Shown: positions 2,699-50,755 of the stretch, one piece after another
Layout: each line of letters starts with the position of its first letter
How positions within the stretch are numbered: position 1 is the stretch's first letter
DNA from: Octopus bimaculoides
Taxonomy: Eukaryota
DNA length: 56,055 nt
Assembly (NCBI RefSeq): GCF_001194135.2
Contig: NC_068997.1
Location: forward strand, 33,115,796-33,171,850
Direction: 5' to 3'
Made by a program: the position numbers and the translations under genes
Notes under the pieces: model-generated
The model's database searches: none
What the model saw: only the letters and a program-made list of their open reading frames with translations
Told to the model about the DNA's origin: nothing

Positions 2699-3632
2699 CG
2701 AGGTGGTATAAAAAAGTTTCCCGGACTAGTTTCGTAGCGCGCCAACAGATGGTAGCACACTGTTGCGCGCGCAGTGAGATGTAGTAGTGACTGTCATGAG
2801 GCAGTGTACCCAGTGACATCAGTGTGTTTACTTCGTAAAGTTGTGAGCTTTGTATTTTCGTGATCAGGTGTATACTGTAGTCAGCGATTTTTGTCATGGG
2901 GAAGAAGTTGGAACAAATAGCCAACGTAGAATTTTGCGTTAAACTTGGGAACTCTGGTATAGAGACATTGAGCATACTTTGGCAAGCTTACGGGGACGAG
3001 GCAATAGGTCGTACGCAATATTTCGAGTGACACCTGCGCATTCAAAAGTGGAAGAACGTTCCTGGAAGACGATGAACGATCTGGAAGACCTGCCACGAGC
3101 GTCACCCTCGGAAATATGGCATTATGCATCGAGAATTCGTCCCCAAAGGCCAGACTGTCAATCAAAAGTTCTTCTGAGGTGTTTTGAAGCGTTTGAGAAA
3201 GGATATTCGACAAAAGCGACCGAATTTGTGGAGCACAAAGAATTGGATTCTTCACGATGACAATGCACCCTGTCACCGAGATCTCCTCACTCGTGAGATT
3301 CTCGCCTAAAAACAGCATGGTATCGTTTGCGCACCCGCCCTATTCGACAACTAACTAACGCCTGCCAACTTCCACTCTTCACCAAGATTAAAATGCAGCG
3401 CAAATCTTGCCGTTTTAACACCGTCGTCGAGATCCAGAGAGAATCGCAGAAGATCCTCTACTCGCTTACGGAAAACGACTTCCAGGCCGAATTCCAACAG
3501 TGGCAGAAATGCTGGGACCAGTTTATTGCTGCGCAACATGGCTATTTCGAAGGGGATGATGTTAAAATTTAGGTAAATAAGTTATCTTTCATTAAACATA
3601 TCTAGACCGGGAACTTTTTTGATACAACCTCG
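2699..3632 (+). mobile_element. mariner (DD34D-type) transposon with internal deletion
   Basis: About 30-bp TIRs (CGAGGTGGTATAAAAAAGTTTCCCGGACTAG / CTAGACCGGGAACTTTTTTGATACAACCTCG) with TA on both sides. Decayed ORF motifs QAYGDEAIGR, LEDDERSGRP, LHDDNAPCH, HPPYS, KCIAAQHGYFEG-like C-terminus (WDQFIAAQHGYFEG). Confidence 0.92.
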
Positions 3633-5099
3633 TATGTAGGTAGGTAGGTAGGGAGGGAGGNNNNNNNNNNNNNNNNNNNNNNNNNNNNNNNNNNNNNNNN
3701 NNNNNNNNNNNNNNNNNNNNNNNNNNNNNNNNNNNNNNNNNNGGGAACTTTTTTGATACAACCTCGTATGTAGGTAGGTAGGTAGGGAGGGAGGGAGATG
3801 AAGGGAGAAAGATATGTACATATGTATGCTTTCTTGTATTTATGTGTATGTGTGCGTATGTAAGTTAACTGGATCCGCCAGACTTTGCGGAAGAAATATT
3901 CTTGATTAAACGGAGAGGAAGACGGCTGCTGCAACGCATTGTGGAGGGCAGAGAGCAAGATGAGACAAGTAAGACATTTTGGTCATCCATTGCATCTGAC
4001 CCCATCCCTTAGTTGTCTTGACTTGCGTTTGTCACGGACGAGAAGGTGAGGTTTATGGTGCGCAACTCACCTTCTTCACCTGAAGCAAAATCACTTCACA
4101 AGTCATCAGTGATCCTTAAGGATTGCTAGATCGTCCTCGTCGCTCCGACGGGCGAACATGGAAAATGTAAGAAATGTATCAATCGATCAAACAATTTAAA
4201 ACGTCTCCATCGACGAAGACTAAAGCAACAACACGCCCAAATCTCATTCTGAAGCAGCTATTAGTTTATTTGAAAATTTATAATCTCTAGAAAATGGTGG
4301 GCGGATGTATATGAAGAATACACTTTTGATTAAAACTTCCATTTACATACTTCAAATAAAATCTTATTTCTTTTGACAGTAATTGCAAATACCAATTTAT
4401 ACAGGACACAAAGCAAGTAGTCCTCTTTTCTATCTATCAAGAAATTATTATTGGACTTATTTGTGGACAATGAAATGTCAAAATGTCGGAATGAAAATTG
4501 AAGCTTTAACATTTTTTTCTGGACAAAATCCAGAGGGACATTTTATATAAACAATTATAACTCTACATTTCTGCAGAAACAATGCAGGAAACTTATTTCT
4601 CTCCAGTCATTTGATGCCAGTCCTTCTGATAGAATCGCTCTATATTACTGTAGTCCTAGTGACGCTACCACAAGTAAAGAGCTTTTACGCGAAACTTACA
4701 TTTCGAATTTGCTAACACCTTGTGTTCTGCATTACGTCACTCATGATTGTGCGTAAACGAGTCTATTTGTAGCAATTACTATTATTTCACAGAAATATAA
4801 TTGTGCCTTTCTTTCAAAAAAAAAAAGTATATATTTCAATAAGTATGCATTCGTTGTGTGTGTGTGGTGATGGGTGGGAGGGAATCATTCTGTTTTAATG
4901 CCGTATTAACACGCTCACCGGTTCAATTTCCACTTATTTGTTAATTTTTTCCTAAGATTTTACTTGCTTCTTGCAACCTCATCAATAGTTGTTCACTGTC
5001 CGTTATCGGAGCTGCGCTCTGTTTGTTTGTTTGTGTGTTTGTTCGTGTGCATGTGTGTGCGTCAGTGTGCATGCGTATACACATATGCATGTATGCATG

Positions 5100-8000
5100 T
5101 GTGAGAGAGGGTCCTACTGCATGAACTGTAAAATACCACCGTACTACACGAAAGGGACAGATTTATGACGCACATCCAACAAGAATCCTGCCAGATAAAC
5201 CACGCCTGTAACAAACACTTTGACAACAAACTCGGATGAAACAGCAGCAGCAGCAACGATCTCAGCAGAGCAAGAATCAACACAGGTACCCAAGCAATAT
5301 TGACGGGATCATGGTGTNNNNNNNNNNNNNNNNNNNNNNNNNNNNNNNNNNNNNNNNNNNNNNNNNNNNNGGTACTGAAAACCAATGCCACCACCAACAA
5401 TAACAACATCGATTACACCCCTGGAATATACGGTGTAATACAACTAGATACGGATGACGTGCATGCCTTAGAGTTACCACCAAAATTCACAACATATAAG
5501 AAAGTCAGAAAAATTGATTGTCTATCTGAGAAAGCAAGAAACGTTCTTAAAAATAAGATGGAGGTTAGGACAATACAACAACACAAACAAGCGATACCAA
5601 AACTACAACAACAATAGCAATGTTAATGACAACAACAATACAGGCAATAACAACAATGATAACCACAACATCCCCCACACGAACAACTATAACGACAACA
5701 CAAACAAACGAAACCAAAGCAACAACAATAGCGATGATAATAACAACAATGACAATAACAACAACACCCGACTCACAGACAGCAATACCGAATGCCGCCA
5801 TCAGCACCAGCACCACCCACAACAAGAACAACAACCACAACAACAACAATAACAACAATGAACACAACACAAGCACCACCACCACCACCACCACCACCAC
5901 CAGCAGCAACAACAATGCCAGCAGCCATAACAACAGCAACCACAACGATAATAACACCAGTAGCACCCTACACTCTGCCTTCAATAACCCCAACAACAAA
6001 TCATACAATATGACGAGGATCTACCTCACAGATATACCCTTTAATAAAAGGATATGTATTCCACCACTGACTGACAGTGAGACAGAGGCAAAGATTTCCT
6101 TAGCTAGAAATAGACTCCGACACGACTTAGACGGGTACAACAAAACCACTAATAAACATGAGGGGGAGACCCACCAACTCAGGCCTACAAAAACTGAAAC
6201 AGTGAATTAAGAACAGAGAACTAGTGTACCTCCCTACGGACAACTCTGACAGACTGTCGATAGACAGCCCACAGGTCTATGTCCAGACCATGCAACAACA
6301 CATAGTAGCATGAGAGAAGTTGCACCACAGGAACATGAAAGAGTGGAAAAATTCCTCAATGTACACATGGGAATGTGGTGCAACATACCCCAACCCAAGA
6401 AACAGACTGCATAAAATTTCCAAGCATTCAACAACGATGTTCCTGCGCTATAGTGGTTACATAAGGATCATAAACCCTACGTAAAACCTGTTATGGGGGC
6501 CCCAATCGGCCAGTTTGTGGAGCAAATATCTCCAGCAATTAGAGGCTATCCTACTTCCTCTCACAAGTGTTACCACCACTCAGTGAAATGTCCCTGGATG
6601 TCTGTGAGCACGGAGATTCTCCTCAGTAGAATTAGTAGTTGCAACTGCTCCAACGACCTTGCAGGTTGTGTAGTAGGTGGTAGTAGGTGGTAGTAGGTGG
6701 TAGTAGGTGGTATAGATGTAAATTTTTCTGTGGAAAATACATTGAGATTACATGTGAGAGAAAAGTAGAGTTCTGAGGAAGTCAACACAAGGGAACTGGC
6801 CCTCCTTAAACTAAGCTATGACTGTAACTACCTAGACAACCATAACCTTAGTAGATATGCCCCACCAGGTCACAGAGGGGAAGACCGCCCACCATCACCT
6901 CGGCGGCGAAAAAAGCACCGCAGAGCGCTGGAGTGGCTGGACCACACCCACGCAAGACTCTGAGAACAACAGTCAGGTGAAAAGAATGATTGCACATGCA
7001 ATAGGGGCTAGCATAAGAACTACCTTGAAGAACCACATAGTAAAGTTTAATAGGAAACTAAACATGCAGTTTCAAGGTGCAGTCATTGGGATCAGTCTTG
7101 CGGGAGATTTGGCTGGTCTCTTTCATGACCTGGTGAAACAGAAAACTTAAACAATCCTTAGCTGAACAATACACAACTGTTTTGCTTTACTGTAGGTATT
7201 CAGATGACATTAATATTCTAGTTAGGACAAACTCTAGTAACTGTAGTGTAGAAACCGAGAGGAGTATAACGGAGAGCAGCCAGCACGTAGCTCGCTCCAT
7301 CCACCAAAATATCATGGTAACTATAGATTACTCTTCTTGGCACCCCAACAATCAACTCCCTGTCCTTGATACTGAACTTTAGCTAGAGACTGTCAACAAC
7401 AGAGTGTAGCTGTTCCACTCCTATTACATGTAACTCACAGCTTCTAAATAGGTTGTTCATAAGAACTCAGCTTTGTCAACAACATGAAAATCAACATATT
7501 GATAGCAGATAATGAATAACGAACCCTGTGAAATGCGAACCTTGTGAAACAAAGAAACATGTACACCGCATGCAATTATCTGGATATCACTAGAAAGATA
7601 GGATTTGGGTATACAGGGGAGCTAGAAAGAAGTTAGATGGTATTATATGTAGTGAAACCAGTGGTAGCTGCCCTAGATAAAGAAGTAAAGACTGGAATAA
7701 GATACAAAGAGTTTGTGACTAAACAAACAGGGTGAACACGTGGTACAAGGCCGACAGATATCAAGGAGTGGAGTTTGTAGAGGCCACAGCCCATGGAGAA
7801 CTAGCCCGTAGGTTTAGAAAAATTCTGAAGGAGACCAAATTCAACATTAATGCCGTTGAAAACCCAGGGAGATCCATCAGATCACAGTTATGTAGGACGT
7901 GCCCCTTTGAGAATACTACACGCACCAATGAAAACTGCATGGTATGTAAGATTAACCCTGGCTTTAACTGTTGTACTAGAAATGTAATCTACAGCATGAG

Positions 8001-8270
8001 GTGCATAGAAGATACTTGTAAAAATAAGAATATGGCATACATTGATGAGACATCTAGAAGCATTGCGGGGAGGTTAAATGAACATCTGAGACAATATGAC
8101 GACAAAAACACTTATCCATACTCTACCAATATGCCAAAGACCAACATGGAGGCTAACTGGGTCGAGGTGACATCCGCATTTTATCCAACCACCCGAAGAA
8201 CCCAACACTCAAACAAATACACGTCCGCATAAATGAAGCATCTCCAGGACTAAATAGGAGTTATACGTTG
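5100..8270 (+). mobile_element. Penelope-like retroelement, Neptune-type (RT plus Cys-rich linker plus GIY-YIG), pseudogenised
   Basis: Motifs LELPPKFTTY, TDIPFNKRI, LHKDHKP, GAVIGISLAGD, RYSDD (7197-7208), HRMQLSGY, NTWYK, CMVCK..CCTRNVIYSMRC...AYIDETSRSIAGRLNEH. Many stops and frameshifts. Confidence 0.88.
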
Positions 8271-16256: not shown

Positions 16257-16294
<38 letters not shown>

Positions 16295-16347
16295 AATGAT
16301 GATGATGATGATGATGATTATAATGATAATGATAATAATAATAATAT

Positions 16348-17524
16348 TGTCCTACAAGTTAACAATAAGAATGACCAACGACACTGACAAACCTACTATT
16401 GCTTCTCCTGGTTTAGAAATTAACAATCAGAAAGACCAAAGATATCCAAATAGTGACAAACCTATCATTGATGCAAAAGACATCAAGCAAAAAGCAAAGA
16501 AGGATTGCATGAATAATATTGAAGACAACTGGAAAAGCAAACTCCTGCATAGAAAATACCCTAACCGCCTGTCCAAGCTAGATATTGATCAAAATCTAAC
16601 ACATCAATGGCGACAAAGGACAGGTCTGAAAGGGGAAACAGAAGATTTTCTTATTGCAATAAAAGATCAGAGCTTACCTACCAGAAACTACCATTTAAGC
16701 GTCCTTAAAGATGGATCTGACCCCTCGTGCAGAATTTTCGGAAAGTTGTTTCTGGCTGCCCAGTCCTCGCTGAAAAGGAATACCTCATAAGACATGACAG
16801 ACTAGGGCAGTACATCCATTGGAATGCTTTTAAATACTACAAAATTAAATCTCATCATAAGTGGTACAGGCACCATNNNNNNNNNNNNNNNNNNNNNNNN
16901 NNNNNNNNNNNNNNNNNNNNNNNNNNNNNNNNNNNNNNNNNNNNNNNNNNNNNNNNNNNNNNNNNNNNNNNNNNNNNNNNNNNNNNNNNNNNNNNNNNNN
17001 NNNNNNNNNNNNNNNNNNNNNNNNNNNNNNNNNNNNNNNNNNNNNNNNNNNNNNNNNNNNNNNNNNNNNNNNNNNNNNNNNNNNNNNNNNNNNNNNNNNC
17101 AAGATCTACACCAGAGGAACTTGTCTGTTAATAGATATGTCTGTCCCACAAGATCAAAATGTCTCAAGAAAAGAACACGAAAAGCTTTCTCACTACAAAG
17201 ATCTGCAAATTGAAATCACAAAAATGTTGAAGCTTAGTACTACGATAATACCAGTAATTAATGGTGCGTTGGGAATGATAAAGAAGGGAGCTGAGAAGTA
17301 TATTAAGCAACTCCCTGGTAACTCCAATCTCCGTTAACTACTAAAGATAACCTTGATGGGTACATCCATATACTACGGAAAGCACTGTCCATCTAAAATG
17401 GAATAAATGTGGTGATAATTTTAGCATGCCTAGCAAAACAAAAGTGCCCTTGCTACTCTTGGCCTCCGGAGGATGTCCGGTACTAAGGCAGCTGAAATAA
17501 ACTTATAATGAAAAGAAACCATAA
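16348..17524 (+). mobile_element. R4/Dong-like RLE retrotransposon, 5'-truncated copy B (different subfamily)
   Basis: GLKGETEDFLIAIKDQSLPTRNY, SGCPVLAEKEYLIRHD..IHW, LLIDMSVPQD..EKLSHYKDL..IIPVINGALGMI. Contains a gap; ends in a GAT/AAT tail. Confidence 0.88.
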
Positions 17525-31771: not shown

Positions 31772-32630
31772 GGAGGTGGTATCAAAAGGTTCCATGGCTA
31801 GTTATGTTTAATAAAAAAAAAATAACTTATTTACCTACGTTTTAGCATCATCTTCTTCGAAATTGTCACATTGCGCAGCAATAAACCGGTCCGAGCATTC
31901 CAGCCACTTATGGAATCCGGCCTGGAAATCGTTTCCTGTAAGCGAATGGAGGACTTTCTACGATTCTCTCTTGATCTCGACAACGGTGTTAAAACGGCGC
32001 CATTGAACAGCATTTTTATCTTAGGGAAACGATTCCATGTTGTTTTTGACGAGAAACTCACGAGTGAGGAGATCTCGGTGATAGGATGCATTGTCATCGT
32101 GAAGAATCCACAGATCCAATCGTCTTCGCCAAACATCTTCCCTGAAACGCTTCAAAACGTCACAGTAGAACTCTCGATTGACGGACTAGCCCTGGGGGAC
32201 GAACTCTCGATGAACTCTCGATACCACATTTCCGGGGTGACGCTCGTGGCAGGTTTTCTAGATCGCTCATCGTCTTCCAGGGACGTTCTTCCGCTTTTGA
32301 TGCGCCTATGCCACTCGAAACATTGCGTACGACCCATTGCCTCGTCGCCGTAAGCCTGCTGAAGCATGCTCAATGTCTCTGTAACAAACTTCCCAAATTT
32401 AACGCAAAATTTCTCGTTGGCTCTTTGTTCCTGTCCGTGATAATATCGCAGACATCAGCATACACGTGATCACAGAAACACAAATTTCACAACTTGCGAA
32501 GTGAATACAGCAATATCACTCGGCACCTGTCACATGAAGGTCACTGCTAGCTCTCACTGCGTACGTTACTGTGTGCTGCCATCTGTTGGCGTGCTACAGA
32601 ACTACTCCGGGAACTTTTTGATACTCTTCG
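31772..32630 (-). mobile_element. mariner transposon, second copy of the 2699-3632 family
   Basis: TIRs GGAGGTGGTATCAAAAGGTTCC and GGGAACTTTTTGATACTCTTCG|TA. MLQQAYGDEAMGRTQCFEWHRRIKSGRTSLEDDERS and LHDDNASY-like motifs on the minus strand. Confidence 0.9.
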
Positions 32631-34088: not shown

Positions 34089-34164
<76 letters not shown>

Positions 34165-34165
<1 letters not shown>

Positions 34166-35655
34166 GATAGACAGCCTGCCGAACTACATCCAGGCAATAC
34201 AACCCCACATCTCCAACAGGGGGAAATCTACAGTACATGAATATGAGAAGAGAGAAAAAATCTTCAATGTTCACCTGATGATGTGGCCAAACATCCTTGG
34301 AGCAAAGAAGCGCACGGTGAACAACTTCCAGGCCACAAATAACCCAGCGCTGTATGGGTTTCCGCAACGATCAAAAAGTGACCATTGATCCGGTGACAGG
34401 ACCCCCGACCAGACCTGTCGGTGGAGCCAACGTTGCCAGTAACTACAGAATCCTCTCAATGATCATACACCCTGTGATCAAAATGTTCCCTGATATGTGT
34501 GACAGCACAGAGGATTTCCTCAGCAGAATTAATGAATGCAACCACGCCTGCGACCTGACGGGATGTATAATAGGTAGTATGAATGTAGTATCCCTATAGC
34601 CATTTATTGACATTGATTTTACTGTGGAGAAATGTGTGGAGATGATTGGCGAGAGCGACTTGGAGTTTCATAATGTTGACACAGAAGAACTGGGCCTCCT
34701 CCTTAGACTTACATTTGACAAGGAGTACTTAGACGAACATGACGTTAGTTGTGTCTGCACCATTAGATCAGTAAGAGGGAGACCCCCTACTGTAACTTCA
34801 ATGGCCAAGAAAATCCCTAGAGAGAAATAGAATGGGTGAACCAGAGCCATACGGACCCCCGGAAACTACAATCAGGTAAGAAAAATGCATGAGGTAGGTG
34901 CGAGTACCTGAGTCACACTAAAGGACCACATATTCAAGTTTAATAACAAGATATACACCCAAGAAGAAGGTGCAGCCATTGGTGTCAGGATCGCTTGGGA
35001 TGTAGGTAACCTATTTATGGTATGGTGGGATAGGCGACTCAAAGAACTATAAGCAGAGAGCTCCATAAACCTAAACATGTATTCCCGCTATATGGATGAT
35101 ATCAACATAGTAACCAAGCACTCCCACAAGACTATGAACTAGAAACTAGCACTGTTAAGAGCATCCAGCAAATAGCTAATTCCATCCACCAGAGTATTAA
35201 AGTAACAGGAGATTAACCTAGCAAGCACCCTAACTATAAGCTACGGGTCTTAGACACGGAGCTCTGACGGGAAACTAAGAGTAATAAGGTCCAGATCCTT
35301 CAATACCACTATGCAAAACCCATAGCCTCTAAATACCTGATCCACAAGAACGCATCCATTGCGGACAATACCAAACTCAGTATCCTAATAGCGGACTTGG
35401 TAAGAGTGATGAGAAATGTGTCCCGCATGTGCGACCCAGCGGAATTCGAATGACACATATAACACTTCATCTACCGCATGCAGTTCTCTGGCTACAGCCA
35501 AAGGAACAGGATTACAAAGGAGCCAGGATTAAGTATAAGGTCATCATAGAGAATGATGCAAATGGGATCATGAGTAAATCTTGGAAAAGCAAAGAAAGAA
35601 CGAAGAAAAAGATAGATAAGTCCAACTCATGGTATGACAACCAAAAATACTAGAG
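34165..35655 (+). mobile_element. Penelope-like retroelement, Neptune-type RT region (second subfamily), 3'-truncated
   Basis: PTRPVGGANVASNY, IGSMNVVSL*P, KDHIFKFNNKIYTQEEGAAIG, RYMDDINIV (YMDD 35089-35100), LRVLDTEL, SKYLIHKNAS, YRMQFSGYS, SWYDNQKY. Motif order is collinear with 6300-7750. Confidence 0.88.
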
Positions 35656-35665
35656 TGCCAAGTTG

Positions 35666-35739
35666 ATATATATTTTTGGTTAATAAAATCTTGTAAAAGA
35701 TTTTATCCTTTTTTGATTTTATTAACCAAAAATATATAT
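35666..35739. repeat. Perfect 25-bp inverted repeat with 24-bp spacer
   Basis: ATATATATTTTTGGTTAATAAAATC (35666-35690) and GATTTTATTAACCAAAAATATATAT (35715-35739). Confidence 0.9.
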
Positions 35740-35924
35740 ATCCGGAATATATTCAATGCTGAAATTTATTGCGGTTTTTACACGTGTACCGAGAACAACT
35801 CAGAAAGATTCCCGCTTTTTTAGCGATGTATATGGATAAGCATCATTCCCTTTGCTGGGCCGGATACATGCGTGTTCGTTTTGGTAAGGTGAGAATTCTG
35901 TTTATTTGTATATGTCGATACTAT

Positions 35925-35987
35925 ACTATGCTGACGAACGGAAACTAGATTTCATTCTGGTAAACGTGAAATCGGTCGATACATAGT
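35925..35987 (+). ncRNA. Type I hammerhead ribozyme (PLE-associated)
   Basis: Stem I ACTATG/CATAGT (6 bp); core CTGACGA (35931-35937); stem II ACG/CGT with inner hairpin ACTAGA/TCTGGT; GAAA (35968-35971); stem III ATCG-GT-CGAT; UH site T35980-A35981. All catalytic core nucleotides are intact. Confidence 0.8.
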
Positions 35988-36108
35988 TGAGTTTATTTTT
36001 TTTTAATGTTGGTTTCTTTCAAAAGTTGTTTTCCTCACATTCGGTACTAAAGTGTGTTTATTTGGGAAGTCTAGTGTGCGGCATTATTCTGTAGTAATGC
36101 CCTATATA

Positions 36109-36252
36109 CACGATGGGCTTCTTTTCATTTCCGTCTACCAAATCCACTCATAAGGCTTTGGTCGGCTTGAGGCTATAGTAGAAGACACTTGCTTAAGATG
36201 CCGAGCAGTGGGAATGGACCTGAAACCATGTGATCTGAAAGCATACTTCTTA
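36109..36252 (-). mobile_element. SINE family B
   Basis: TTTCCGTCTACCAAATCCACTCATAAGGCTTTGGTCGGCTTGAGGCTATAGTAGAAGACACTTGC is the reverse complement of the family B body. Confidence 0.75.
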
Positions 36253-36974: not shown

Positions 36975-37373
36975 ATTCTTTTATTCGTTTCAGCCATTTG
37001 ACTGCGATCATACTGGAACACCGGCTTGGGGGTTTTAGTCGAACAAGTCGACCCCAGGACTTATTTTTTTGAGCCTAGTACTTATTATATCAGTCTTTTT
37101 TGCTGAGTCCCCAAGTTACGGAGACGTCAGCACACCAACACCGGTTGTCAAGCGGGGATGGGGGTACAAACACAAACACAAAGACACATTTACATAGATA
37201 TATACATTTATATATACAGCGGGCTTCTTTCAGGATCCAGCTACCAAATCCATTCACGAGGCTTTGTCGATTCGAGGCTATAATAGAAGACACTTTCCCA
37301 AGGTGCCACACAGTGGGACTGAACCCGGAAGCATGTGGTTTGAAAGCAACACAGCCACGCCTATATATTTTTA
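36975..37373 (-). mobile_element. Two adjacent SINEs (family A2 at about 36975-37175; family B at about 37219-37373)
   Basis: CAGCCATTTGACTGCGATCATACTGG (A2 tail) and CTACCAAATCCATTCACGAGGCTTTG...CAGTGGGACTGAACCCGG (B body and head). Confidence 0.75.
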
Positions 37374-41523: not shown

Positions 41524-42052
41524 ACGTGGAGGAGGATCTGTGATGATCTGGGGAGCTGTATCTTGGAAATTCACTGTCCCAATGGTTTCCCTTCATGGCA
41601 GAATTAATAGTCAAGACTATTTAAGCATTTTATCTGATCAAATTTATCCTAAAGTTGCAGAACAGTTTCCGGAGGGAAACGCAATCTTTCAGGATGATAA
41701 TGTACCAATTCACACAGCTAAAGTTGTTACTGAATGGCACGAGGAACATTCTAGTGAAATTAAACATCTTATCTGGTCACTACAGTCCCCAGATCTCAAT
41801 ATTATTGAACATTTATGGTGCATTTTAGAAAGACAAGTAAGGAGTCGATATATCCCCACCATCATCACTACAAGAACTAGAGACCATTTTAGCTGAAGAA
41901 TGGACAAAAATTACTTTGGAAACAATTCAAAGTTTGTACGAGTCCATACCTCGTAGAATTCAAGCTCTAATTACTGCCAAAAGTGGTCCTACCCCATATT
42001 AAAATTAATTTGTGCGAAATTTTAAGCTGTTTCCATAATTTCTCCACCTCCT
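41524..42052 (+). mobile_element. Tc1-family transposon 3' part, same family as 1-547
   Basis: GGGSVMIWGAVSW...IFQDDNVPIHTAKVVTEWHEEHSSEIKHLIWSLQSPDLNIIEHLW, with a decayed right TIR. Confidence 0.92.
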
Positions 42053-49133: not shown

Positions 49134-50755
49134 TATGTATGTATGACGATTGCTTCATTATGACAGAACATAACCGACTCATCAACACTCACACCACACC
49201 CGCATCACACAGCACAATCCCACCGTTGATGAGCCCATAGTTGACTTTTAAGACCAGCCGCTTGACAGGGTTTGAAACACAAGTGAGAGATATTATTCAC
49301 GTTTCTTCTATATCTTTGCCCTTTGGAATCTGATTCTGAAGGAATGTTTTTGTGAACTAGCATACGTCTTTTAAGTCCAGATATTTTCTTACAATTTTTG
49401 GGACATATGACACAAGTCATGAGAGGTGGTTGGGGTGCAAGTTTATTACCTACCTGGGTGTTTCGATTTTCATATGACTTTACATGATTCACGTATCCTA
49501 CTTTTGAAAACAGAACACGATTACACATAATACATATCCAATATTCACTGTTGATTTCAGTTGCAATTGTTCCTTTGCGACAGGCCCTTTAAACTCAGAG
49601 TGTTGAATCATCTTTTCCTCCCAAGCGTTACAACCAGTCTTAACAACACCTTTCCACTTGTTCCGATCCAGAACATCAGTTTCCCAATCACTTTTGTTCA
49701 TATCTAGTTTCTTCAGGTTTTCCATCACAGTCTTTATACCTTTTCCGCGGCTTATGCAGCTTATGCTGTGGTCACTTACCAGAGTTGAGCTCACCATAAA
49801 AAAGGACGCTTTGGCAATCGCTCATCTTTCATTCTAATAACATGTCCGGCCCAACTCATTTGAGACAAGATAACATGTTAAATTGAACTACAACGTACCA
49901 TGTGCAGAACTTCTGTATCTGGTATAAAGCATTCCCACTTGACTCCCAAGATACGTCTGAGGCACTTTTGATGAAATCTCTCTGGCATTTTCATATGACA
50001 CCTGTAAGTGGTCCACGTCTCACTCGAATAAAGAAGTGCAGTCAATACACAGGTTTTATAGACACTGATCTTTGTCTGCAGGGAAATACTTCTATCTGCC
50101 CATACTCGCTTTTCGAGTTTTCCAAATGCAACACTTCCCTTCCCCATTCGATAGTATATCTTTGTATCAGGAACACCATCTCTTGACAGTGTGCTTCCAA
50201 GGTAAACAAAGGTGTCAATGACTTCTAATATTGTTCCATTCACAAAAATGTTTAGTTCAGAATATGTTTGTCCTGGCGCAGCAGTAAACATTACTTTGGT
50301 TTTCCCAAGACTAATTGTGAGTCCGAAATATACACATGCAGGGGAAAATCTGTCCATTATATGTTGCATATCCCCCTCTGAGTGTGCCAACAAATCAGCA
50401 TCATCAGCGTGAAGTAATTTTCTTATAAGTGTTTTGAAAGTCTTTACTTTGCAGTTAAACCGGGTCAAATTAAAAATGCGACCAGATGTCCAAAATCTGA
50501 TTCCGCTTCCCCTCGTGCAGGGCAGGAATATCTCTCTGTTCGACAGTGTTGTCCACTAAAAATTCATGAGATAGCTCACCATTGAAGACTACCTCAGCTT
50601 TTATATTTCTGTGTAATTCCTTAAAGATGCTCACAAAATTTGTTGGACAACCAAGTTTACACAAAACAATTCACAGTGCCTCCTTGTTTACCGTGTTAAG
50701 TGCCTTAGTATTTGTCTCTAATCCTTTCAGACGCGTCCACCAGATGCATTCTTTG
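49134..50755 (-). mobile_element. RTE-clade LINE (RT C-terminal half plus C-terminal C2H2 array), running into gap
   Basis: LGCPTNFVSIFKELH, LLHADDADLLAHSE, FGLTISLGKTKVM, FVYLGSTLS, KISVYKTCVLTALLYSSETW, LRRILGVKW, DRNKWKGVV, then three Cys/His fingers and a (CATA)n tail. Confidence 0.92.

Follow-up and report, generated by a model that had tools for sequence, protein, structure and literature searches.

The window, that is, the whole stretch of 56,055 nucleotides of Octopus bimaculoides DNA analysed here, contains no evident host gene. It is rich in (CA)n, (TA)n and (TATG)n arrays and is interrupted by 14 assembly gaps. Transposon debris is scattered along it, with mariner-like and Tc1-like transposase remnants and LINE reverse transcriptase (RT) fragments at 2881-3318, 16257-17337, 31871-32373, 41540-41896 and 49878-50468. 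The window also holds two remnants of Penelope-like elements (PLEs), one of which lies upstream of a hammerhead-like motif at 35925-35987 on the forward strand. Here we ask what this motif is and which element it belongs to.

The PLE remnant beside the motif is a decayed RT at 34164-35668 on the forward strand, delimited by protein alignment and cut at both ends. Its best match is P0001, an 803-aa Octopus vulgaris protein (66% identity, E 2.5e-163), of which it spans residues ~187-705; all matches above 53% identity come from O. vulgaris. These matches bear out the preliminary description of the locus, in which the upstream ORF remnant had been read as a PLE. The 513 codons contain 10 in-frame stops and three frameshifts, and from the stops we estimate ~16% substitutions. 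The N-terminus, the CxxC linker, the GIY-YIG endonuclease and the 3' third are missing. At its 5' edge the remnant abuts a (TG)n array (34090-34165).

The element had also been called Neptune-type. In full-length relatives (P0004, P0008 and P0013) the RT is followed by a CX3-4CxxC linker and a GIY-YIG endonuclease (VVYxIxC...YIGETSRS). Since this fits the description of Neptune and Nematis elements (PMC8557442), the label is consistent as far as the relatives go, but the window copy itself lacks the region in question.

The second PLE copy, at 5974-8258 on the forward strand, corresponds to residues 2-765 of P0004 and is heavily decayed but more complete. It keeps the CxxC linker and the GIY-YIG region, including an intact 166-aa ORF at 7732-8232, and is followed by (TA)n at ~8300 and then by (AC)n at ~8520. 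We considered this copy as a source of the motif and rejected it. No hammerhead lies downstream of it, and the similarity of its 3' flank is insignificant (alignment z ~2.3).

On the 3' side of the RT remnant the homology breaks off abruptly. DNA similarity to the O. vulgaris locus L001 ends at 35664 and protein similarity at ~35668, and no remains of a linker or an endonuclease are detectable from there through 37100 (~1.4 kb). The break falls on a junction at 35666-35739, a perfect 25-bp inverted repeat (arms 35666-35690 and 35715-35739, 25/25 match on the reverse strand) with a 24-nt spacer, which runs into (TA)n. The inverted repeat could be a rearrangement foldback or a tiny MITE-like insert.

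Beyond the junction lies an unclassified single-copy segment on the forward strand, 35740-36102, that contains the motif. The inverted repeat and (TA)n mark its left edge, and a SINE-like repeat of ~140 bp its right one; this SINE-like repeat occurs twice (36103-36243 and 37209-37348, 76-78% identical). The segment has no coding remains and no similarity to the rest of the window or to the PLE loci that we compared. The motif is indeed downstream of the RT remnant, as first described, but the gap measured from the last homology is ~257-260 bp and not 270 bp.

Read on the forward strand, 35925-35987 is ACUAUG CUGACGA ACG GAA ACUAGA UUUCAU UCUGGU AAA CGU GAA AUCGGUCGAU A CAUAGU. The topology is that of a type I hammerhead, with three helices around the core and open ends in helix I. 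Helix I consists of six Watson-Crick pairs between 35925-35930 (ACUAUG) and 35982-35987 (CAUAGU). It is followed by the 5' core CUGACGA (C3-A9, 35931-35937), helix II (35938-35967), the 3' core GAA (G12 A13 A14, 35968-35970), helix III (35971-35980) and A17 at 35981, so that cleavage is predicted between 35981 and 35982. The invariant hammerhead core is complete: C3 U4 G5 A6 C7 G8 A9, G12 A13 A14, the pair A15.1-U16.1 within AUCG-GU-CGAU, and H17.

Helix II is the unusual part. Its outer, closing stem is formed by ACG and CGU (35938-35940 with 35965-35967) and has just 3 bp (A-U, C-G, G-C). A symmetric GAA/AAA internal loop separates it from the inner stem, ACUAGA/UCUGGU, which has 6 bp including one U.G pair and carries a UUUCAU loop. 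Positions 10.1-11.1 are occupied by A35938-U35967, in place of the highly conserved G10.1-C11.1 pair that closes helix II in other hammerheads. No extra nucleotide follows A9; the paired A10.1 comes directly after it. Our reading and a descriptor scan thus agree with the preliminary description on the full core, the 6-bp stem I, the two-part stem II (3+6 bp) with its closing A-U pair, and A17 as the cleavage site.

For stem III the agreement is partial. The near-palindrome AUCGGUCGAU is there, but the 2-nt loop with which it had been drawn is sterically impossible, so that in a monomer helix III is limited to 3 bp (AUC/GAU) with a GGUC loop. Two copies of AUCGGUCGAU can instead pair with each other as a 10-bp intermolecular helix of -8.4 kcal/mol, in which the two central pairs are G.U. 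The sequence of 15.2-16.2 and loop 3 is therefore palindromic, as in a dimeric helix III, albeit imperfectly.

An 8-mer comprising the 3' strand of helix III and the cleavage site, GTCGATAC (35975-35982), is repeated 61 nt upstream at 35914-35921, just before helix I. The upstream copy could pair with AUCGGU as an alternative partner. We also asked whether the repeat is left over from a tandem or circular unit and dropped the idea, because the estimated probability of such a repeat arising by chance is ~0.17.

How often should a motif of this kind arise by chance? The strict descriptor finds no comparable motif elsewhere in the window on either strand, and relaxed rules that admit a U3-A8 core variant and a bulge after A9 still return the single match. 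In 400 first-order Markov copies of the window the strict descriptor matches once. In 4e9 random bases of the window's composition it matches 248 times, which corresponds to 0.007 matches per window and ~330 per 2.7-Gb genome. If the fold also has to be as stable as the -11.8 kcal/mol of our motif, 6 matches remain in 2.52e9 random bases. This amounts to an expectation of 2.7e-4 for one window, ~5e-6 for the downstream flanks of the two PLE remnants in the window (1 kb each, 2 kb in all), and ~13 per 2.7-Gb genome. The null model captures base composition alone, and repeat-rich real DNA may yield somewhat more matches. Motifs of such quality do arise by chance across a large genome. With 2.7e-4 per window and ~5e-6 downstream of PLE remnants, however, a chance origin at exactly this place is very unlikely.

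We looked for further copies of the motif. Neither the motif nor the region 35665-36100 has a second copy in the window (self-BLAST, repeat search), and no homologue of the motif occurs in ~160 kb of related loci (126 kb from O. vulgaris and 34 kb from other assemblies). Scanning JGI metagenomes (two patterns), IMG/VR and GTDB genomes for exact patterns of this hammerhead type returned zero matches; cephalopod DNA is scarce or absent in these metagenome, viral and prokaryotic collections, and hence the zeros are weak evidence. As no second copy was found, there is no family and no covariation to confirm the motif. There are no tandem units around the motif either (TRF, repeat searches), as a retrozyme array would have.

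Rfam does not recognise the motif. The preliminary description had named Hammerhead_1 (RF00163) as a check, and cmscan of the whole window, of 501 nt and of 83 nt around the motif gives no hammerhead at the gathering threshold; in the slices, even that of 83 nt, there is none at E<=10. The same models also miss genuine PLE hammerheads in loci L001-L003 and L005 (described below). Since Rfam is blind to these bona fide cases, its negative result on our motif carries little weight.

Folding predictions call for more caution. At -16.2 kcal/mol (z = -2.85 relative to shuffled sequences), the most stable fold predicted for the 63-mer retains helices I and II and pairs the UGACGA core with the helix III strand. 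The hammerhead fold, at -11.8 kcal/mol, lies 4.4 kcal/mol above it, and helix III has an ensemble probability of 0. Secondary-structure prediction ignores tertiary contacts, and thus the unfavourable fold is a caution only. Strong self-cleavage of 35925-35987 as a lone monomer is doubtful in view of the predicted fold, A-U at 10.1-11.1 and the absence of a partner copy nearby, taken jointly. By published account, PLE hammerheads cleave poorly in vitro in any case, even as dimers (PMC4209133).

Could the motif still be an accident? In that case it would be an AT-rich, hairpin-bearing stretch that happens to fit the descriptor, and that was noticed since the PLE remnant next door primed the reader. 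A genome of 2.7 Gb has room for the ~13 equally stable and ~330 strict matches given above. Moreover, the motif departs from consensus exactly where the descriptor is lax (A10.1-U11.1, U15.2-A16.2, no bulge after A9, the 3-bp minimum closure of helix II), and deviations confined to unconstrained positions are typical of chance matches. The missing second copy, the missing Rfam match and the 4.4 kcal/mol gap between the hammerhead fold and the lowest-energy fold point the same way. Yet the position speaks against an accident, given the low expectations per window and within 1 kb downstream of a PLE remnant on the same strand. The 6-bp helix I and the near-palindromic helix III exceed the descriptor's minima, and the Rfam result adds nothing when bona fide PLE hammerheads are missed as well. 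On balance we consider a chance match unlikely, though it deserves to be kept in mind.

To see what hammerhead the RT remnant should have had, we turn to its relatives. We compared the O. vulgaris loci L001, L004, L005 and L006 (126 kb, GCA_951406725.2) and loci from other assemblies, L002, L003, L007 and L008 (34 kb). The O. vulgaris family carries a motif with the consensus GGACCA CUGAUG(A/C) (C/G) GUCACA GGAG UGUGAC GAA AGAACU C UGGCC, present in 10 copies. Every family copy has one on the strand of the ORF, and further inverted copies lie upstream. Where the end of the ORF is preserved, the motif lies 449-537 bp past it and ~190 bp before the 3' end of the element; in a truncated copy at L004 it lies ~465 bp past the last aligned residue. 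The conserved 3' region of this family consists of ~250 bp before and ~190 bp after the hammerhead. L007 and L008 carry UCUCA CUGA(A/G)GA G G(CC/UU)GCC GA(A/G)G GGC(GG/AA)(U/C) GAA AAUU U UGAG, 64-80 bp past the ORF. Across three lineages of intact relatives, the hammerhead lies 64-540 bp past the ORF stop.

Judged by their sequence, the relatives' motifs are the 'minimal' PLE hammerhead (min-HHR) of Cervera and de la Pena (PMC4209133). All 13 of the 13 motifs have an extra nucleotide between A9 and 10.1. G10.1 pairs with C11.1, or with U in L007 and in one O. vulgaris copy. Helix II is a continuous 6-bp stem with a tetraloop, and there is no helix III hairpin. The helix III sequence is palindromic in L007 and L008 (AAUU), whereas AGAACU of O. 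vulgaris is not. In a joint alignment of the relatives, four pairs of helix II have changed on both sides and 94% of the cells are paired.

Individual copies deviate from this picture. The normally invariant A9 is C in 8 of the 10 O. vulgaris copies (CUGAUGC-G), for example at 12366-12405 of L004; CUGAUGA-C occurs in just two copies, both in L005 (12435-12474 and 9216-9255). In L002, UUGACGA A GUUAAC GAAG GUUAAC GAA AAUAUU A (3602-3634) lies ~525 bp past the PLE ORF. It has U for C3, keeps G8, has a palindromic helix III and is missed by a strict CUGANGA descriptor. In L003 (2-457, 514-2832 and 3021-3698) the 772-aa PLE ORF is followed by another ORF, which is cut off where the contig ends and which resembles either an upstream ORF1 or the beginning of a second tandem unit. 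Between the two, a 188-bp spacer contains no canonical hammerhead, only GAAAGCUU.

From nine min-HHRs of the clade, with covariation support, we built a covariance model (R1) and ran it on the window with filters off. At E<=10 it matches neither 35925-35987 nor anything downstream of either PLE remnant; by this measure the motif does not match the hammerhead family of the RT's own clade. Likewise, the region 35665-36100 compared with the 3' regions of the related PLE loci gives nothing above background (blastn, local alignment, nhmmer profile). Elsewhere in the window, at 4086-4117 on the reverse strand, AAGGAUCACUGAUGAC agrees with 15 of the first 16 bases of the O. vulgaris min-HHR including its 5' flank. 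The remainder does not fit (R1 11.3 bits, E 0.8), and the stretch is either a decayed copy or a coincidence.

The state of preservation separates the motif from the RT as well. When the 63-nt motif is made to drift neutrally by ~16% in simulation, only 0.24% of trials leave its 11 core positions and all 18 pairs intact, and this figure does not yet include indels. Hence a flawless hammerhead as old as the RT is improbable. The motif should then be either younger than the RT, or selected, or no descendant at all. Most simply it is younger, because it is intact while the RT has accumulated 10 stops and three frameshifts.

The preliminary description had taken the motif as the probable processing signal of the adjacent element. 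The analysis does not support this claim. The homology ends at 35664-35668, no linker or endonuclease follows within the next 1.4 kb, the relatives' hammerhead is a different one, and R1 is negative. To rescue it, the motif would have to be the 3' pseudo-LTR signal of the very PLE that the RT belongs to, moved close to the RT by an internal deletion of ~0.75-1 kb in which the endonuclease domain was lost together with the 3' UTR upstream of the motif. Such a history has something to recommend it. The motif is on the same strand and ~257 bp past the last RT homology, canonical PLEs bear hammerheads near their 3' ends (PMC4209133, PMC8557442), and Neptune-like derivatives without an endonuclease are known (PMC8557442). 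But at the relatives' spacing the hammerhead would be expected ~1 kb further downstream, homology breaks off right where the inverted repeat and (TA)n lie, and no similarity to the conserved 3' region of the O. vulgaris family is detectable here. No recognisable pseudo-LTR repeat surrounds the motif, nor does it sit at the set distance after an ORF. Furthermore, all three lineages of relatives carry the bulged min-HHR with G10.1, which a model that ignores the window motif describes, and the probability that a motif stays intact through as much decay as the RT shows is ~0.2%. We therefore regard a common origin of RT and motif in one copy as quite unlikely.

We propose instead that the motif comes from another retroelement with a hammerhead, of which a solo fragment ended up next to the older PLE remnant, and put the probability of this at about 0.55. 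The segment 35740-36102 may be a 5'-truncated piece of that element, which would most likely be a separate, younger element of the PLE or retrozyme type. Several observations lead us to this reading. All invariant positions and the three helices are present. The chance expectation is low. RT homology stops at an inverted repeat, and no endonuclease comes after it. The motif is intact beside a decayed RT, and PLE hammerheads with a small palindromic helix III have been described. Lastly, PLE hammerheads are mostly isolated, and PLEs insert beside other PLEs with a bias to microsatellites.

The last point rests on published work. Most PLE hammerheads in animal genomes are isolated motifs, attributed to truncated PLEs (PMC4209133), and PLE insertions tend to fall within or next to PLE copies already present (PMC6765202). 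A bias towards insertion into microsatellites has been described, for which the CxxC linker of Neptune elements is hypothesised to be the mediator (PMC8557442). The related PLE copies that we compared end in microsatellites, and the junction at 35668 is likewise (TA)n-rich.

In mechanistic terms, the parent would be a hammerhead-bearing retroelement of the PLE pseudo-LTR or the non-LTR retrozyme kind. A short, 5'-truncated solo fragment of it would have landed at the (TA)n-rich broken 3' edge of the older RT remnant, or would have been rearranged onto it. In the parent, cleavage of the retroelement's transcript by the hammerhead would fall after A17 (35981). It would probably need either a second copy, with two AUCGGUCGAU strands forming the 10-bp intermolecular helix III, or host factors. 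What is left at the locus is probably a lone relic, weak or inactive on its own. Several things count against a solo fragment: there is no second copy in the sequences searched, helix II is closed by just 3 bp before its internal loop, Rfam finds no match, and the lowest-energy fold is not the hammerhead.

A flawless motif next to an RT that is ~16% decayed could also mean that the ribozyme outlived its parent element because selection retains it for some task in the host, transcript processing for instance. We see no evidence of conservation, of transcription or of a nearby gene, and the 56 kb are transposon debris and microsatellites. A younger insertion accounts for the contrast between intact motif and decayed RT more simply. 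Exaptation by the host is thus very unlikely.

How does the motif compare to known hammerheads? Min-HHRs occur in the pseudo-LTRs of metazoan PLEs (PMC4209133; Lunse et al. 2017, as cited in PMC6765202). With them the motif shares the type I topology and the invariant core, a helix II that is longer than usual, and a helix III whose shortness and near-palindromic sequence suggest a dimer, as well as the adjacency to a PLE and the isolated occurrence. That PLE hammerheads with a short palindromic helix III act as dimers, as the preliminary description stated, is established (PMC4209133, PMC6765202). Unlike the min-HHRs, the window motif has no extra nucleotide between A9 and 10.1, has A10.1-U11.1 rather than G-C, and has U15.2-A16.2. 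Its helix II is broken by a 3x3 purine internal loop. Its helix III has 4+4 nt around GU, whereas that of PLE min-HHRs has 0-2 nt, and it lies outside any recognisable pseudo-LTR.

Variants of PLE hammerheads with a small palindromic helix III are known from Drosophila, rotifers, shrimps and mosquitoes (PMC4209133). The variants of Drosophila virilis Penelope, rotifers, shrimps and mosquitoes resemble our motif in the canonical-like but very short, palindrome-centred helix III and the irregular helix II. However, they form families of many copies, highly conserved in D. virilis, while the window motif is known from one copy.

Another group to compare is that of metazoan non-LTR retrozymes and satellite repeats, which carry canonical type I hammerheads (PMC7229834; bioRxiv 10.64898/2026.07.22.740005) and for which a derivation from PLE pseudo-LTRs has been proposed. 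Here the shared features are the 6-bp helix I, the lack of a bulge following A9, a hairpin in helix III with a few base pairs, and low-GC surroundings. Retrozymes differ in that they are tandem units of 170-400 bp, each with a hammerhead that has a 4-bp helix II and conserved contacts of loop 1 with loop 2. The window motif has no tandem repeat, no recognisable loop-loop motif and no Rfam Hammerhead_1 score. For another cephalopod, the giant squid, 235 Rfam Hammerhead_1 matches have been reported in the genome (PMC6962438).

One may also ask whether, with this motif, a cephalopod hammerhead family not yet described comes into view for the first time. Such a family would be defined by A10.1-U11.1, a bipartite helix II with a purine internal loop and a palindromic helix III centred on G.U. 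The motif would then belong to an unrecognised retrozyme-like element, or would be a ribozyme that selection preserved when the parent retroelement decayed. We hold this to be highly improbable.

Hammerheads in PLEs and retrozymes are well documented, and a single further instance adds little. The location in PLE pseudo-LTRs, the dependence on dimers and the relation to retrozymes are already established, and the window motif adds minor structural details at best. Its value is more of a caution: a perfect-looking ribozyme beside a dead RT need not belong to that RT. At this locus the hammerheads that the relatives carry, the abrupt end of homology and the unequal decay of RT and motif all speak for separate histories. 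If a family of the variant did exist, the known structural range of animal hammerheads would come to include A-U at positions 10.1-11.1 and a helix II with an interruption, and cephalopods would gain a retrozyme-like element for study.
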